Shown here one piece after another: positions 1 through 62,749 of a stretch of 64,000 nt of DNA (position 1 is the first letter of the stretch; each line of letters begins with the position of its first letter). The notes under the pieces were generated by a model. That model did no database searches. It saw only the letters and a program-made list of their open reading frames with translations, and had not been told where the DNA came from. Source of the stretch: Thalia democratica (lineage: Eukaryota); NCBI GenBank assembly GCA_965202585.1, contig OZ241831.1, positions 14,632,001 to 14,696,000 on the forward strand, read 5' to 3'. The translations under genes were made by a program, and so were the position numbers.

Positions 1-400
1 TTTTACTAAACTTATTAAAATATGTCATTTATAAGTGATAGTATAGTATATTAAATAGCTTTTAAACCCTTGACAAATAATGCAACATTTGTAATTCTTG
101 AAAGTATAAACCTCAAACCTAAATTAAAATTTTAATTCTATAAAGTCTTTTGTTTTTTACTAAAAGCTTAAAAATACAAGTCAGTTTTTACTTATTGTCG
201 AAGAAAAGCTCAGACCCCTTTAAAACTTCAAAAATATATAATGTATGCTCTGCTCAGTGCAGTTTTAAGACTTTATTTTGTTTTAAAGTTGTTTTTAGCT
301 TAATGTTAATTTGTACCCTGCTAGAATGTAAAAATAATGCTAGTTTATCTGGGTAGTTGTCTAAATTGCACGAGCGGAAAAAATTGCACAAATATACTTT
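1..400 (+). repeat. Dispersed direct repeat, second copy at ~18371..18770
   Basis: 1..~400 aligns base-for-base with 18371..~18770 at offset 18370-18371 (TTTTACTAAACTTATTAAAA ... GGGTAG(T/C)TGTCTAAATTGCACGAGCG). The ORFs 150..356 and 18521..18718 are near-identical by-products. Confidence 0.9.
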
Positions 401-2358: not shown

Positions 2359-2824
2359 TGTTTACACATTAAAAAGTCTGTGCAAGCTAGATACTTATGT
2401 TGGCAGGCCAAATCTTGCCTAGGGTCCTTACGTTACCACCCCTGGTTTAATCACTAAGATGAATTAAAAAAATACGATAAGTTATTTTAAACAAATAGAT
2501 CTACATATAATTGTTTAGTACATTCTAAATAAGTTTTACTTTTAATAGTACTGAGTTTATTTTTTTACAAGTCTTATGAAATCAAGCTAGCTTTCAGTAA
2601 GTCAAATAAATTTTTGTCCCTGGCAATAGTAACTTTTGTTATAATCAAATAAAGTTTTTTAATTAAAATATAAGTTGTTAAATGTTGCATTTTGCTACAA
2701 ACAAGTAAATTATGAACTTATTATTTTGGTATTAGATTTTTTTAATAAATTGGAAGGTATTGTAACTTAACGTTTTTAAATACTTAATTACTATACACTT
2801 TACAGCTTTGAAAATTGAGTAAAC

Positions 2825-5800
2825 ATGTCATTACAAATTAAGATTAAGACTGACAGTAAAGTTGAAGTCATCCAATGTGAGAATTTAGGATTAACAGTAA
2901 TGGATTTGACCCATTATGAAAAGCTGTTTAGAACAATTGTGAAAGAAACGGTCATTGAAGATTTCAGTCCAAAATATGTATACATGGTAAATTGTTACAT
3001 TTTTATTTAAACACTATAAAAGTATATACCTAGTTTTATCATTGTTTTAAAGAAATCAAGATTGTTTCTTAAATGAGAGCTTGAATATTGAACTATAAGT
3101 AGTTATAAAGTCAAAGGATGGTTGGGTCAAATATTTTTTTAAGAAAATGAAAAAAGGCTTTTATATGAAAGTATAAACTATAGGTTAGTTTTTATGCAAA
3201 ATAAATTTTCTATTAACAATTGATATACTGTTAGTTATGCAAACAGTTTGTTTTACGTTGTTTTTTGAGATAAAAAAATAAAATTTTCAGAAACTGATCT
3301 TTTAAAAATATTAAAAGTATTAGTAAAAATTATTGTCAAGTAAAAAAAAGATTTTCTTCGAAAGTTTTAAATTTCCTGAATTATAGTAAAAGACTAATTA
3401 GTTAAGAATAAGAAAAACCTAAAATAGACTTATTTGAAAAATAAGGAAAGATATAATTTCAAAAAATATAATTTTCCCTTTTAGTTTGCACAGTCTATTT
3501 TTAGTTTATATGAAAGCTACCGAGCTCACCAGTTTTAATCTCTCATATCTCAAAAACTACTTTAAGCTTTACTAAGCTGTAAATAATGGGTTTACAAATG
3601 GTAAAAAAGTCTAATATCCACAAAGGTACACTTTTGTACAAAAGGTCAAATATGCACAACAACACTTTTGCACGGGGTCTATTTTGCTTAAAGACTTTTT
3701 TACACAAGTTGCATGGGATAAAAAAAAATATTAACTTAAATTTTTTATTATTTTTTTTACTATCACTATAACCCCTTAACCCTTACCCTCTGTTGGTAAT
3801 TTTGTTTTTTGTTTGTTTATAATTAATTTATCAATTGTTTTTTTATTTTCTAGTTTATTTTTTATATATATATTTTTTCCTATTAAAAAAATTTTTTTTA
3901 CTCTTGTGCAAAAATGATCCTTTGTGCAAAAGTGACCTCTGTGAAAAAGTGTCCCTTTGTGGAAAAATGTCTCTTCCTGCAAAAAAGTCTTTGTGCAAAA
4001 GTGTCCCTTCATACATATTTGACTCTTTGTGCAAAAATAACGTTGTGCATATTTGATCTGTTACGGTAAAAAATACTTCTTAGCATAATTAATAAATAAG
4101 ACAAAATTTTAAAATATAAGGTTAACCCTATATATGACCTAACAGAATGAGATAATTTCATTTAGTTTTTGACATAAAGTTATTTTATAAAGAAAGATTT
4201 TACAAAAGTGTAAATAATAGGAAAAAGTATCATTGCTTTACTTAATTTTTGTTTGATTTAACTAAAAGTTTTTCTTTTTTTTAGTTGGTTTAGGTGAGTG
4301 ACTCGAAATCTTCAAGAAACAATTGTTAAATAGTTATAAATACAATAAAACAATTGATTAATTTTTTTTTCTTACAAAAGTATATTGAAAATCCTCTATC
4401 AAAAAACTATTTTAATCCAATAAAAATAAATCATAGGCTCTTAATTGAAAGCTTAAAGTAAAAGATATAAGTTAGTTTATATTAATAAAACTAAGCTTGA
4501 ACTGTACTCTAACCATTGTTATATAAAGTTTCTGCTATAGACCTATGCACCCCTATATTTTTTTTTTTTGGAAAAAAATGACTTACTAAAGTATATCTAA
4601 TTTTTTGAGCTGTAGACTTTAATTGCTGCAAAAATACAACTAGCTGCACAACAAAATATTTCAATTTCTACTCTTAAATTAGCTTCTGATTTTCAGGTTA
4701 TTTTGTGGATTTCAAAGTTTAAAGACAACTTAGAATTTAGAAATATGAGCGAAGGTGGAAATATTCCGCCTATAGAACAATGGAATCTTGATGTAAAACA
4801 ATTTTTTGACGATAATATTCGGTCTTATGAAGAGTACTTTCTACTTTTTCAAGTTTGTTATAATTTGAGCTTTAAAAAATTATAGTTTCAGTGTAGTTTT
4901 AAACCATTTTTATTTTCAAATGCACAGTGTACTCGAAACTAGATTTATAAAAATTGTCAGTGGTTTTATATCCTAGATAACCCTAAATTTGAACAGGAAA
5001 ATTATGAAATTTAACCATTACAGAACCTAATTTATCAGGCTTTAAGTAAAGATAATTAAGCAAGTTTTTGCTACATGCTAGTTGTCTAATAAAAAGTAAA
5101 TTAAAGTAAAATATTTTTGATAATGTGTGTTTTAGATTTAAGTAAAAATTGAGACATTTCTTTGTTTTATCATCTGTTAAATTTTTAGTAGCTACAAAAT
5201 ATAAAACGCTTTTAATTCAATTTTTTTGTTGTACTGTAAAATCAAAATAAAATCATGTTAAAAAAAATTAAATTTAATAATAAGTTTGCAATGTTGATAA
5301 TCTTCAACTTAAAAAAGAAATTTTCTGGCTTTAATAACCAATCTTTAAAAAGAGATTATCTACTTTTGTGATACTTAAATTAATACTACTTAGACATTAA
5401 TTATCATTTTTAGTGTTTTTTTTTCAGTTTATTTTATTTTTAATTTGCTTAATTATTTTAAAAACATTTTGATAAAAAACCTTCAAATTTAGTAATCAGT
5501 TTTTATTGAAAGTTGTTACGAAAAGTAATGAATTTTATATTATAAAGTTAAGGAAAAGTATAAAAAAAAATTAGACAGTCATGATAGTTTACATTTTATT
5601 CACAAATCTATTTGACCAGTGGCATAACTTATGTGTGGTGATGCTGAAAAAATAAACTACTTAAAATTTAATTAAACTTTATGTTAAAATATGCAGTTAT
5701 GTTAAAACTACAAAAAAGAATGTAGTTTCAAAGTATTAGAGATAAAAATAACGAAAACAGTTTTTTTTGCAACCCATGTAAATCAACTGCGTTGCCACTG

Positions 5801-7505
5801 ATAAAGACCTTAATTATTTTCATTGTGAATTATATAAGAATTATTAAATACTATCTAATTTTTATACTTGAAAGTTTAAATTTTTAGGAATTTTTTATTT
5901 AATAGTCTCAATTTAATAATCTTTTTGTTTTAATTCAAAAATTATTTCATAAAACTTTAGGTCTATAACTGCCAAAATAGTTCTGTTTTTGAGATAAGAG
6001 CATTAAAATAATTTTTCTTAAATTAAAAAGTTCCCTTCATTTAAGTTGTGATACGTTTTAAGCTTGTATTAGATAAGATAAGTTTATAAATACCATTTTT
6101 TATTTCAATACTAGTTTAAGTCCATTGTGAATTAGTTTAAAAGCGTTTTAATTTTATTATACTTTGAATTTAAAAACGAGTTCATTTATTGAAATTTGAA
6201 GTTTCATAATTTTTAGATTCGAAAATTGTATAATTTTTTTAAATTTTGAGTAAAAGTATTATTTTCCTAAAAAGTTAAAAAAAACTAATTTTATTTTATG
6301 GTTATAATAATCTTAAGTTTTAAGTTTTCCTAAAATTTTTGTCAGGGCTTTTCTATTAATGCAAGGTATATTTCATAAAAATTTGAGGTTAATTGATTTA
6401 AAAACGAAGGAGAAGATAGATTTTTTCGTAGACTTTTCAAAATTCTTTGAAAATTGGCAATGAAAAATTTCTTCTTCATACGTTTGTAAACTTATCTTTT
6501 TACACAACTGACTATATCTCAATATTTAAATATTGTGTTTTATTCTGTTAAAAGTATCTTATAGTATATTATTATAGATTTTTTGTTAATTTCTGTAAAA
6601 AAAAAGTTGGACTCTTTTATGACTTTTGTTTAAGTATAAAGTGTAGATTATAAGTAATTGTATTGCTACAAACTGGACATGAAGCATAAGTAGTAAAAAA
6701 TTATAAAATACTAATCATTAGCTAAACAACTATGATACTAATTTAATTATATGAGAAGCCATGTACAGACGATATAAGTAGTTTGAAATGAATGTTGCTG
6801 TTTATTTTACTACGCCCATTAAAATTATTATGTTCTCAACTTTATTATAATATCAAGAAAATTTTCCTTTTTAAGCAATTGTTTAAGAAACTTAGTAATA
6901 GTGTTTGTAGCTTAAAGTATAATGTTTTAACCTTTTAAAGTTACAAACACAGTATGTTGCTTAATTTTTTTTATTTTAAGTCAAATTAATTTTAAATTAA
7001 CTTTTTTTTGAACTTTAAAGTTTAGTTAAGTTTTATTAAAAATCTTTTCGAAAAAACTGTTAAAATCGTTGAATAAATTGTCAAAAATTCGTGATAACCT
7101 TTTCAGTACTGTAATTCGATTTTGCAATTTAAAAAAGTTAGTGAATTGATTTTCCATATTGTAAGAAGTTTAATTAAATTATTAAAAAAAAACTCTGCAA
7201 AAGTACTTTACTTTTCAGCAGTTTAGTTTTCTAATCAAAAATCAATTTGCTGATCAATTTGTAACTAAATAGTTGAGCAAATATTTAACTACGGCTTAAA
7301 ATGCTCTTAAATCCACAACATACCGATGTGTGACAGTTTATGTAATTTAACATTTTTACAGGTCTGCAGTTATTTCAAAATAAAAACCCTTGAGATGTTC
7401 ACCTACCAGTACATACTGAAGCAGTGGCATTTAATTTCAAAGCACGCAAACGAAAAGTATAAAGAAGATTTTAGACAGTTGTTTAGTCTTTTGCACGGAT
7501 TTTAA
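2825..7505 (+). CDS. Divergent Skp1/POZ-like protein, 153 aa, 3 exons: 2825-2986, 4697-4852, 7362-7505
   Basis: All-phase-0 GT-AG junctions (ATG|GTAAAT, TTTTCAG|GTT, CAA|GTTTGT, TTTTACAG|GTC) join into one ORF: MSLQIKIKTDSKVEVIQ...YVYMVILWISKFKD...IPPIEQWNLDVKQFF...YFLLFQVCSYFKIKTLEMF...LLHGF*. The motif pattern resembles Skp1 (VIQWCTHHKD, WDxEF, LILAANYLDIKGL), recognised by eye only. Confidence 0.6.
3600..4064. mobile_element. Third, more diverged copy of the TTGCAC foldback/MITE family
   Basis: GGTCAAATATGCAC on the left vs GTGCATATTTGATC on the right, TTTGTGCAAAA subrepeats, and an ACCCCTTAACCCTTACCCTC core. Confidence 0.6.
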
Positions 7506-37460: not shown

Positions 37461-37584
37461 GCCTACAACCATACCACACTGAACACACCCCATCTCGTCC
37501 GATTTGGGAAGTTAAAAAAGTGTCGGGCGCGGTAAAGAACTTAGATGGGTGACCGCTTGGGAATACCGCGTGCCGTAGGCTTTT
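37461..37584 (+). rRNA. 5S rRNA-like edge copy (probable pseudogene)
   Basis: GCCTACAACC...GTAGGC-TTTT, 120 nt to the final C. Helix V is intact (GCGCGG/CCGCGT) but loop E is altered (TAAAGAA), and helix I has extra mismatches. Confidence 0.85.
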
Positions 37585-44993: not shown

Positions 44994-45119
44994 GCCTACG
45001 ACCATACCACACTGAACACACCCCATCTCGTCCGATCTGGGAAGTTAAAAAAGTGTCGGGCTTAAAGGTTAGTACTTAGATGGGTGACCGCTTGGGAATA
45101 CCGCGTGCCGTAGGCTTTT
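44994..45119 (+). rRNA. 5S rRNA-like gene, variant with +4 nt (unit 1)
   Basis: GCCTACGACC...GTAGGC (122 nt) plus TTTT terminator, and a TTTATAA at about -29..-23. IE TTAGTA and box C AGATGGGTGACC are intact; box A and helix V are altered. Confidence 0.9.
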
Positions 45120-45375
45120 ATTTTCAAGCTCTTGTTTGTTGGATTAATTCTTCATACTTATTATGAAAGTTTCTAGTTTATCTTAAACATTTTTCAATAA
45201 TAAATGACACACTAACTAGACTGTCATTTAGTTGTAGACTTATTTTGTCTGTTGCTTTCATTTTGCTATTTATATAAAAGCCATAACTTTATTTTTTACA
45301 AGCGTTTCGTTCTGCTCTAGACTTTTAACAAATATAACTTGAAATAAACAGTTGCAGTAGTACTTTTTTAGTTTT

Positions 45376-49458: not shown

Positions 49459-49818
49459 TTATTTTGAGCTGGTGTACTTGGTAACAGCTTTAGTTCCCTC
49501 TGAAACTGCGTGCTTTGACAACTCGCCGGGGAGCAAGAGCCTGACAGCAGTTTGAATTTCTCGGCTGCTCACAGTTGACCTCTTGTTGTAATGAGCCAAA
49601 CGTGAAGCCTCTGCTGCAATGCGCTCGAAGATGTCGTTGACAAATGAGTTCATGATTCCCATCGCCTTGCTGGAAATTCCGGTGTCGGGGTGCACTTGCT
49701 TCAAAACTTTGTACACGTAGATGCCAAAGCTTTCTTTGTGCCTCCTCCTTCGCTTCTTCTTGCCGTCGACCGGGGTGGTCTTGGCTACTGACTTCTTCGC
49801 GCCTTTGGTTGCGGTCAT
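49459..49818 (-). CDS. H2B: Histone H2B (unit 2)
   Basis: Protein identical to unit 1; stem-loop at 49430..49445. Confidence 0.99.
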
Positions 49819-49977
49819 GATGATGTGTGAACTTCAGTCTCGGCGCCAGCTTATATACTGAAAGTTTATGCAAATTAGCATTTCCGTACGCGAACGACAG
49901 CCTCTCTCATTTTATGATTCTCTCGTTTGTCGTAAATATTTTTAGGTGGTCCTGAAAAGGACCTGGTTTGTTTTAAC

Positions 49978-50358
49978 TTAGGCTGATTTTTTTGAAGCGG
50001 TCTTCTTGGGCAACAATACTGCCTGGATGTTTGGAAGAACACCTCCTTGAGCAATAGTGACGCCGCCGAGAAGCTTGTTCAACTCTTCGTCGTTGCGGAT
50101 AGCTAGTTGCAAATGGCGGGGAATGATCCTGCTTTTCTTGTTGTCACGAGCAGCGTTACCGGCAAGCTCGAGCACTTCTGCGCTCAAATACTCGAGAACG
50201 GCAGCCAGATAAACTGGAGCACCAGCTCCGACTCTTTGGCTGTAGTTGCCAGTGCGCAACAGGCGGTGCACGCGACCGACTGGAAACTGCAGTCCTGCAC
50301 GAGAAGACCTGCTCTTCGGCTTAGATTTGAGTTTTGATCCTTTACCACGTCCCGACAT
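49978..50358 (-). CDS. H2A: Histone H2A (unit 2)
   Basis: Protein identical to unit 1; stem-loop at 49948..49963. Confidence 0.99.
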
Positions 50359-50552
50359 CTTGTTGTTCGAATGATTGTGCCAAGATGCTCGCATAGCTCT
50401 GTATAAAATTCAAACCTAACCGCGTCGAACGAACAACTAATTTGCATATGTCGTAGCTGCTCTTTAATCTTGTCAAAATGTTTGTTCAGCAGTGTTGAAG
50501 AAATTTGATTTTGAAATGGGTGGTCCTAAAAAGGACCGAGTTTGCTAAATGT

Positions 50553-50897
<345 letters not shown>

Positions 50898-51053
50898 TTA
50901 TTTATAAGCTGTTACGGACGCGTACGGTTACTACTAAACTAATTTGCATACTCAGAAAAATCTCTAACTTACATTCTTTCGTTTGGTTTATTTTTTCTCA
51001 CTATCAAACAAAGTTTAAAAGTGGCCCTGAAAAGGACCGGTTTTAGCTAATGC

Positions 51054-51590
<537 letters not shown>

Positions 51591-51651
51591 TCATGTTTTG
51601 TTAATATTTTGATTGAGTGGTCCTGAAAAGGACCTTGGGTAAAAGAACAAC

Positions 51652-52236
51652 TTATTTCTTGCAGCTCTTCTTGGTACTTGCCTTCTTAGATGCTTTTTTG
51701 GCTACCGGCTTCTTCTTGGTTACTTTCTTCTTCTTGCTTGCAGCTTTTTTAGATGCTGCCTTCTTAGGAGCACACTTTTTAGCAGGTCGCTTTTTGGCTG
51801 CTGGTTTTTTCGCTGCCTTCTTGGGAGCACACTTCTTTACTCGTTTCTTTGCTGCGGCCTTCTTTACTGCTGGCTTTTTAGCTACTTTTTTTGTCCTCTT
51901 CTTGGGACCAGCAGCTGGCATTGGAGCAAGCTTGAACGAGCCGGAAGCGCCTTTTCCAGTAGTCTGGAGAAAAGAACCTTTGGTCACGCCGCTGGTAAGT
52001 GCTCTCTTCAAGTGAGAATTAGAAGCTGAGAGGTCAAGCTTGTAGGTGTCCGCGATATATTTTTGTATCTTCTGGCGGGATGTACCTTTTCGTTCCTTCA
52101 TTGCTCCAAGGGCAGAGCTAATCATCTCCCTGTAAGTCGGGTGTTCTGCCTTCTTGGCGCTTGGTCTCTTGGAAGACCTGGCCTTGGCTGCGGCCGCCGC
52201 TGCTACTGCTGGTGCTGCTACTGCTGTGGTAGACAT
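51652..52236 (-). CDS. H1: Histone H1, 194 aa (unit 2)
   Basis: Full-length N-tail; stem-loop at 51619..51634. Confidence 0.98.
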   Translation of the reverse strand: MSTTAVAAPAVAAAAAAKARSSKRPSAKKAEHPTYREMISSALGAMKERKGTSRQKIQKYIADTYKLDLSASNSHLKRALTSGVTKGSFLQTTGKGASGSFKLAPMPAAGPKKRTKKVAKKPAVKKAAAKKRVKKCAPKKAAKKPAAKKRPAKKCAPKKAASKKAASKKKKVTKKKPVAKKASKKASTKKSCKK

Positions 52237-54209: not shown

Positions 54210-54335
54210 GCCTACGACCATACCACACTGAACACACCCCATCTCGTCCGATCTGGGAAGTTAAAAAAGTGTCGGGCTTAAAGGTTAGTACTTAGATGGG
54301 TGACCGCTTGGGAATACTGCGTGCCGTAGGCTTTT
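54210..54335 (+). rRNA. 5S rRNA-like variant gene (unit 2)
   Basis: Same as unit 1 except one C>T (AATACTGCG). Confidence 0.9.
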
Positions 54336-62623: not shown

Positions 62624-62749
62624 GCCTACGACCATACCACACTGAACACACCCCATCTCGTCCGATCTGGGAAGTTAAAAAAGTGTCGGGCTTAAAGGTT
62701 AGTACTTAGATGGGTGACCGCTTGGGAATACCGCGTGCCGTAGGCTTTT
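62624..62749 (+). rRNA. 5S rRNA-like variant gene (unit 3)
   Basis: Sequence as in unit 1, with TTTT terminator. Confidence 0.9.

Follow-up and report, generated by a model that had tools for sequence, protein, structure and literature searches.

The 5S-like genes of a tandem histone-gene array are described here, and on balance we regard them as a histone-repeat-linked 5S paralogue that no longer acts as ribosomal 5S, a young pseudogene spread by homogenisation. These genes are 5S-derived, carry lesions in both structure and promoter and have intact paralogues elsewhere in the genome, features that together define a 5S pseudogene of a tandem repeat. The array copies descend from a long-working, structured 5S RNA gene that acquired a lesion in box A and helix II and, later, a replacement in helix V. 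The original prediction for this locus had considered three possibilities: a pseudogene riding on concerted evolution, a TFIIIA/TFIIIC site that had been retained, and a new Pol III RNA. The first of these three readings is the best supported, and every histone-linked copy is damaged.

The window, meaning the entire stretch of 64,000 nucleotides that was analysed, holds the beginning of the array, with one 5S-like gene per unit on the forward strand (Table 1). In each unit the 5S (+) is followed by a spacer of ~4.3 kb and then by H2B, H2A, H4, H3 and H1, all on the reverse strand. The array period is 8.2-9.2 kb and 20 of 21 full units carry the 5S, which places the array among 5S-histone linked repeats. 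In the 4.3-kb spacer adjoining the 5S, neither open reading frames (ORFs) of at least 70 amino acids nor Rfam families nor short-period tandem repeats were found; some units of the array also have a spacer segment of ~1 kb that others lack. Homogenisation had been predicted from the window copies and holds for the whole array, in that a 23-mer diagnostic of the variant has 20 exact copies, all within this one array on contig C7. The variant helix V core likewise occurs 20 times, always at C7:14.677-14.843 Mb and on one strand, so that the genome-wide census of the variant comes to these 20 copies and the edge copy, confined to one array. One unit inside the array lacks a 5S as the result of a ~240-bp deletion (Table 1), and the 5S is therefore dispensable within the array unit. 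An assembly artefact was rejected on the basis of 20 identical junctions, a regular 8.2-kb spacing and unit-specific flanking variants, and the stretches read contained no runs of N.

Table 1. Positions of the 5S copies, their lesions and promoter elements, and associated features (window coordinates unless a contig is named)
Feature	Position	Strand	Details and basis
Array copy 1	44994..45116	+	123 nt; RF00001 84.1 bits, full model 1-120
Array copy 2	54210..54332	+	RF00001 82.9 bits, model 1-120
Array copy 3	62624..62746	+	RF00001 84.1 bits; identical to copy 1
Edge copy	37461..37581	+	121 nt; RF00001 78.1 bits
Lesion 1	45049..45051	+	AAA replaces G56-C57; alignment with rDNA-linked 5S
Lesion 2	45062..45066	+	TTAAA for two bases of the helix V 5' strand, +3 nt
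TATA-like GGTTTATAA	44963..44971	+	-31 to -23; alignments
Box C equivalent	45077..45094	+	Identical to canonical gene, by alignment; box limits from the Xenopus definition
T4-A-T4 Pol III terminator-like run	45116..45124	+	Sequence; TTTT at 45116-45119
Histone quintet H2B, H2A, H4, H3, H1	49459..52236	-	ORFs; source of four-fold sites used as neutral yardstick
5S-removing deletion	C7:14727479-14727496		Takes last 44 bp upstream, entire 5S and 72 bp downstream
C8b array	C8 46.18-46.31 Mb	+	DNA search
C8a array	C8 46.99-47.16 Mb	-	DNA search

Scoring with Infernal against Rfam RF00001, as the original prediction had proposed, recovered the three anticipated array copies on the forward strand (82.9-84.1 bits), and all four copies in the window exceed the gathering cut-off of 38 bits over model positions 1-120. 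The array copies are 122 nt long to the last C (44994-45115), as had been noted beforehand, versus 118 in the genome's canonical 119-nt 5S. Alignments show two differences in array copy 2: a private C>T at ~54318, within the 3' strand of helix V, and a T>C in the TATA-like motif. Lesions were defined by reference to the rDNA-linked 5S type that ends in GGCT, from which the array copies also differ by the substitutions G22>A and A106>G. The predicted replacement of GC by AAA in box A (lesion 1) was confirmed at 45049-45051. It alters box A, adds 1 nt and breaks the G21-C57 closing pair of helix II, a pair that the Infernal alignment flags as non-standard.

Lesion 2 changes the 5' strand of helix V to GC-TTAAA-GG (45060-45068) in the array copies, as opposed to GCGTGG in the canonical gene. 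Helix V is thereby weakened to 2+2 pairs around a 5x2 internal loop, and a continuous helix is lost. The earlier statement that helix V cannot form was thus too strong, as these pairs remain and the arm retains a folding energy of -7.4 kcal/mol. It had also been claimed that the 5' strand was changed and its partner was not; the change in the 5' strand is real, but the partner in the histone-linked copies is CCGCGT and differs from the canonical CCACGT by A106>G. The edge copy has the box A lesion in common with the array, yet its helix V 5' strand is intact: GCGCGG pairs with CCGCGT, as C69 compensates for the change at position 106. Its loop E reads GGTAAAGAAC in place of GGTTAGTAC, and it has two other substitutions, so that the earlier description of this copy as retaining the pairing with a damaged loop E agrees with the alignments. 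The self-consistent CCCA/TGGG pairing of helix III that had been pointed out is present, although it is merely the normal 5S sequence of this species.

Unconstrained minimum-energy folding was uninformative, since the canonical 5S itself misses the 5S shape, and folds were therefore computed with helices I and II enforced. Folding had been proposed at the outset, and the array copy proved weaker than the canonical gene. The 5S-shaped fold has energies of -43.4 (canonical), -40.2 (edge), -33.3 (array) and -31.9 kcal/mol (sister array), and the helix IV/V arm alone has -15.1, -16.8, -7.4 and -5.7 kcal/mol, respectively. The motif TAAAG is present both in the array lesion (TTAAAGG, 45060-45072) and in the altered loop E of the edge copy (GGTAAAGAA, 37527-37540), and it resembles the nearby box A lesion (TTAAAAAAG). 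This likeness may reflect templated repair or slippage as opposed to unrelated events.

Box coordinates in the variant were assigned according to the Xenopus definition. The intermediate element is +67 to +72 in Xenopus numbering, which fits the gene at that point, and it coincides with the damaged 5' strand of helix V. The promoter parts had been described as intact, and this is true of box C, the TATA-like motif and the T4 terminator (Table 1) but not of the intermediate element, which is itself the damaged stretch. Of the three internal elements of a type 1 Pol III promoter as defined in Xenopus, the array copies thus have box C unaltered, a box A with AAA for GC and an intermediate element interrupted by TTAAA; the distance from box A to box C is changed by +4 bp in the C7 array and by -8 in the sister arrays on contig C8. 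The rDNA-linked 5S genes and the C8a arrays have the TATA-like GGTTTATAA at the same distance from the gene, and this motif, at -31, is the only upstream one shared with the rDNA-linked 5S. It has a 5-bp deletion in the edge copy, and most C8b copies have TATGA instead of TATAA. A GCAAATA-like motif near -60 was dropped as a shared element, being offset by ~7 nt and not kept in the C8 arrays.

A search for other 5S loci, also proposed originally, found copies in the rDNA, linked copies on contigs C8 and C1648 and a solitary copy on contig C10. In the whole-genome RF00001 search the canonical copies are 119 nt long and score 112 bits. In a 10-kb stretch around one of them, 5S, 18S, 5.8S and 28S lie on a single strand. 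Each rDNA unit of ~15.5 kb carries two intact 5S genes in its intergenic spacer, a placement inspected by position for the first ~100 of the 531 or more canonical copies. The canonical helix V core occurs 531 times, corresponding to at least 531 intact copies, versus 20 variant cores, a ratio of more than 25 to 1. The variant is therefore a minor paralogue and not the working 5S supply of the species. That it might be simply the species' 5S, the outcome that had been named as the one to disprove any special status, is contradicted by the same counts.

Position 23 and the final base distinguish two sequence types of the canonical 5S (GAGTAC...GGCC and GAGCAC...GGCT). The two genes of a 45S rDNA unit lie ~2.95 kb apart in the intergenic spacer on the rRNA strand, for example in C258:5000-14999 (925-1043) and in C26. 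Some rDNA units have two 5S genes of the second type (period ~15.09 kb) and others have one of each (~15.51 kb). The solitary 5S scores 105 bits and is located at C10:1921200-1921650 (173-291, reverse strand), distant from the rDNA arrays. Two substitutions disrupt base pairs of helices I and V, and the DNA on its upstream side is of the kind seen in rDNA spacers, which makes it a dispersed fragment of rDNA spacer.

When the 5S plus flanking sequence was used as a DNA query, homologous histone arrays were found on contig C8 (C8a and C8b, Table 1) and a fragment on C1648. All 27 of 27 C8 and C1648 copies have a normal box A and score 63-72 bits; an 8-nt deletion, G64-G71, has cost them the whole 5' strand of helix V together with the two outer pairs of helix II. 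Another single nucleotide is missing from the C8b copies and from one other copy. None of the 48 histone-linked 5S copies in the assembly is intact, and the only intact copies found are rDNA-linked. The junction sequences GGGCTTAAAGGTTAG (C7) and CAGTGTCTTAGTAC (C8) are diagnostic of the damaged forms, the canonical junction being GTCGGGCGTGGTTAG. The TTAAA replacement in C7 and the 8-nt deletion in C8 affect one 8-nt stretch and are independent events, because the C7 edge copy has the box A lesion yet keeps its helix V strand. Among the histone genes themselves, one C8a unit (C8:47035000-47044500) has a 7-nt frameshift deletion in H4 (~2820-3090) and a 23-nt deletion in H2B (~3827-4163). A homogenised broken histone gene was considered as a precedent and rejected, since the frameshift junction in H4 occurs once in the genome, so that one unit has died and the defect has not been homogenised. 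The 3' stem-loops of the array histone genes score 27.8-33 bits (local positions 4014-6226 and 2937-5171) and are missed by default Rfam annotation because these scores lie just under the 34-bit cut-off of RF00032.

Several comparisons indicate that the linked gene worked long after it separated from the rDNA copies. The pair 69-106 is U-A in both rDNA types and in two metagenome contigs with identical canonical 5S, and is C-G in the edge copy; this compensated double change shows that the histone-linked lineage remained a structured RNA once it had split off. Outside positions 53-77 the 5S bodies of the C7 and C8a consensus sequences differ at 1 of 98 sites. Identity between the same arrays is 57% at -21 to -1, 68% at +124 to +170 (47 bp) and 70-86% in the spacers, and 36 of 343 four-fold sites (10.5%) in the five neighbouring histone genes differ between C7 and C8. 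The deficit of changes in the body is significant relative to the four-fold sites (P = 2.4e-4) and to the spacer (~20% divergence; P = 8e-9), and it follows that purifying selection maintained the gene through most of the divergence of the arrays, until fairly recently. Neutral decay would have lasted for at most ~1/4 to 1/2 of the array divergence time, a bound calculated from one observed difference. Gene conversion from rDNA copies is an unlikely cause of the conserved body, since the diagnostic A22 and G106, the G24 of C8 and the lesions have all survived in the interior of the conserved blocks.

Whether constraint continued after the lesions was assessed from changes within and between the damaged arrays, and the signal is suggestive and marginal. 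Between C8a and C8b, which share the 8-nt deletion, 0 of 110 body positions are substituted where ~4.4 would be expected, and 14 of 352 four-fold sites differ. The probability of this deficit is ~0.011 relative to the four-fold rate and 0.055 when the flank rate of 2.6% is used. Variable sites in the C7 array number 1 of 123 in the body and 46 of 784 in the flanks (p = 0.014), but the body does not differ significantly from four-fold sites (7/264) or from histone intergenic DNA (36/1154). The body varies like its flanks within C8b (2/110 vs 28/772) and in the irregular C8a copies (3/110 vs ~3%). Peripheral copies, that is, the edge copy and the irregular C8a copies, decay at the rate of their flanks.

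We hypothesize that relaxed selection lies behind the loss, with more than 500 intact 5S genes in 45S rDNA units supplying the ribosome. A damaged version would then have spread through the array of ~22 units via unequal crossing-over and gene conversion. On this account each array was hit independently, each lesion afterwards spreading by repeat homogenisation, and peripheral copies would escape this process and decay further. Because the TATA-like motif, box C and the terminator are intact, the variant may still be weakly transcribed by Pol III. A normal helix IV/V arm could not form in any such product, which would be a by-product with no ribosomal role.

Three other readings were weighed against a pseudogene spread by homogenisation. 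We consider it rather unlikely that the lesion-bearing copy is still selected as a non-ribosomal Pol III unit. Such a unit may act as an RNA, namely a 5S-derived small RNA that has helices I-III, loop C and helix IV and lacks helix V. It may instead act as a DNA site, for instance a boundary or tether, at which box C and the upstream TATA recruit Pol III factors within the histone array. Sites bound by Pol III factors act as chromatin boundaries in the case of tDNA insulators and TFIIIC-only sites, and the short Pol III promoter module inside a Pol II gene array is a possible analogy; unlike those sites, the TFIIIA-type internal promoter is partly destroyed here. The conservation of the body speaks for continued selection: C7 and C8 share 99% identity over blocks 1-52 and 78-123 at a four-fold divergence of 10.5%, the C8a and C8b bodies accumulated no substitutions after their shared deletion, and C7 body polymorphism is depleted relative to the flanks. 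These tests are marginal after the lesions, however, and hinge on the yardstick used, and the free decay of peripheral copies counts against such selection. The TATA-like spacing, box C and the terminator are retained, and the spacing is exact in C7 and C8a though the adjoining 21 bp are only 57% identical, but the TATGA of most C8b copies weakens this argument. The damaged box A and intermediate element are the parts needed by TFIIIA/TFIIIC in the Xenopus model, the spacing from box A to box C has shifted in opposite directions in the two arrays, and one array unit is entirely without a 5S. The retained TFIIIA/TFIIIC site and the novel Pol III RNA of the original prediction are therefore favoured by the conserved body and disfavoured by the damage to both internal elements and by the unit without a 5S. 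That two arrays lost the helix V 5' strand separately, through lesions within one 8-nt stretch that is also the intermediate element, counts in favour of continued selection; the probability of such a coincidence by chance is ~0.08 (a rough estimate, not computed). A version in which the linked copies are selected as such a unit and loss of the helix V strand and intermediate element, having occurred twice independently, was favoured or tolerated strikes us as rather unlikely. If true, this loss would free the element from ribosome assembly and TFIIIA binding, with helices I-IV, box C and the TATA retained.

We judge it improbable that the copy is long dead and that conversion from the rDNA-linked 5S, or between histone arrays, mimics conservation. 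More than 500 potential donor copies exist, and the histone coding regions are likewise far more alike between arrays than the spacers are, as inter-array exchange predicts. Set against this, homology with the rDNA copies extends for only ~50 nt on either side of the lesion, identity falls sharply at the gene borders (to the 57% and 68% given above), and the same A22 and G106 of all histone-linked copies, the G24 of C8 and the lesions have survived within the conserved blocks. That the variant is a functional 5S rRNA of a specialised kind, perhaps stage-specific, which enters ribosomes and tolerates a larger loop in helix V, appears very improbable. Two 5S classes in one genome have precedent, such as the rDNA-linked oocyte 5S of turtles (PMC8789306), and the variant matches the full model at 84 bits, far over the cut-off, with helices I-IV, loop C, loop E and 4 of 6 helix V pairs kept. 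On the other hand, the folding energy of its helix IV/V arm is down by about half, the conserved GC of box A is lost, and intact copies outnumber it as described above. The sister arrays, without the helix V strand and two helix II pairs, indicate that the histone-linked family as a whole is not kept as rRNA.

As a pseudogene spread by homogenisation, the variant can be set beside several known systems. The 5S pseudogene of Xenopus adjoins a working 5S gene within the same repeat unit. This pseudogene belongs to the oocyte 5S DNA repeat of Xenopus laevis and has been characterised as a truncated copy (Jacq, Miller and Brownlee 1977, cited in PMC5187791). Like it, the variant is a defective 5S in tandem units, made uniform by homogenisation, with working 5S also present. 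Unlike it, the variant is full length with internal lesions and is the sole 5S of a histone quintet unit, and the working genes are in 45S rDNA. Linked 5S-histone repeats are known in Artemia, Mytilus, Hydractinia and freshwater snails (PMC13525598, PMC5011920), and as in those repeats one 5S lies inside each tandem histone quintet unit. The linked 5S of Hydractinia is reported as transcribed, and damage to linked 5S is not mentioned in the portion of that report considered (PMC5011920). In the present genome, unlike Hydractinia and the other linked repeats, 48 of 48 linked copies are damaged and the intact genes are elsewhere. 5S genes inside 45S rDNA spacers (L-type) are represented by the NOR-5S of turtles (PMC8789306) and notothenioid fish (PMC10138776), which the canonical copies, as opposed to the variant, resemble in lying within the rDNA intergenic spacer. 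They differ from NOR-5S in numbering two per unit on the rRNA strand and in appearing to be the main or only intact 5S supply instead of a minor class.

The linkage of 5S to histone genes and 5S pseudogenes in tandem repeats are thus already known; the dating against four-fold sites and the independence of the lesions are added here. The locus provides a datable case of a linked 5S paralogue dying in a histone repeat once rDNA-linked copies carry the load, and serves as a case study of lesions fixed array by array through concerted evolution. For annotation, the 48 histone-linked copies should not be counted as 5S genes. Should the post-lesion constraint be true, a 5S-derived Pol III unit without helix V in histone loci would represent a new use of the 5S scaffold.

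A metagenome scan for any of the three 5S forms returned two contigs, both with the canonical form, and no histone-linked form. In one marine metagenome contig (ERZ1740072 NODE-6938), the 5S (1866-1984) is identical to the second canonical type and adjoins U5 and U2 snRNA genes (3784-3898 and 3980-4175). Here the 5S is linked to other genes, U2 and U5, in an organism that is either the same or a relative.
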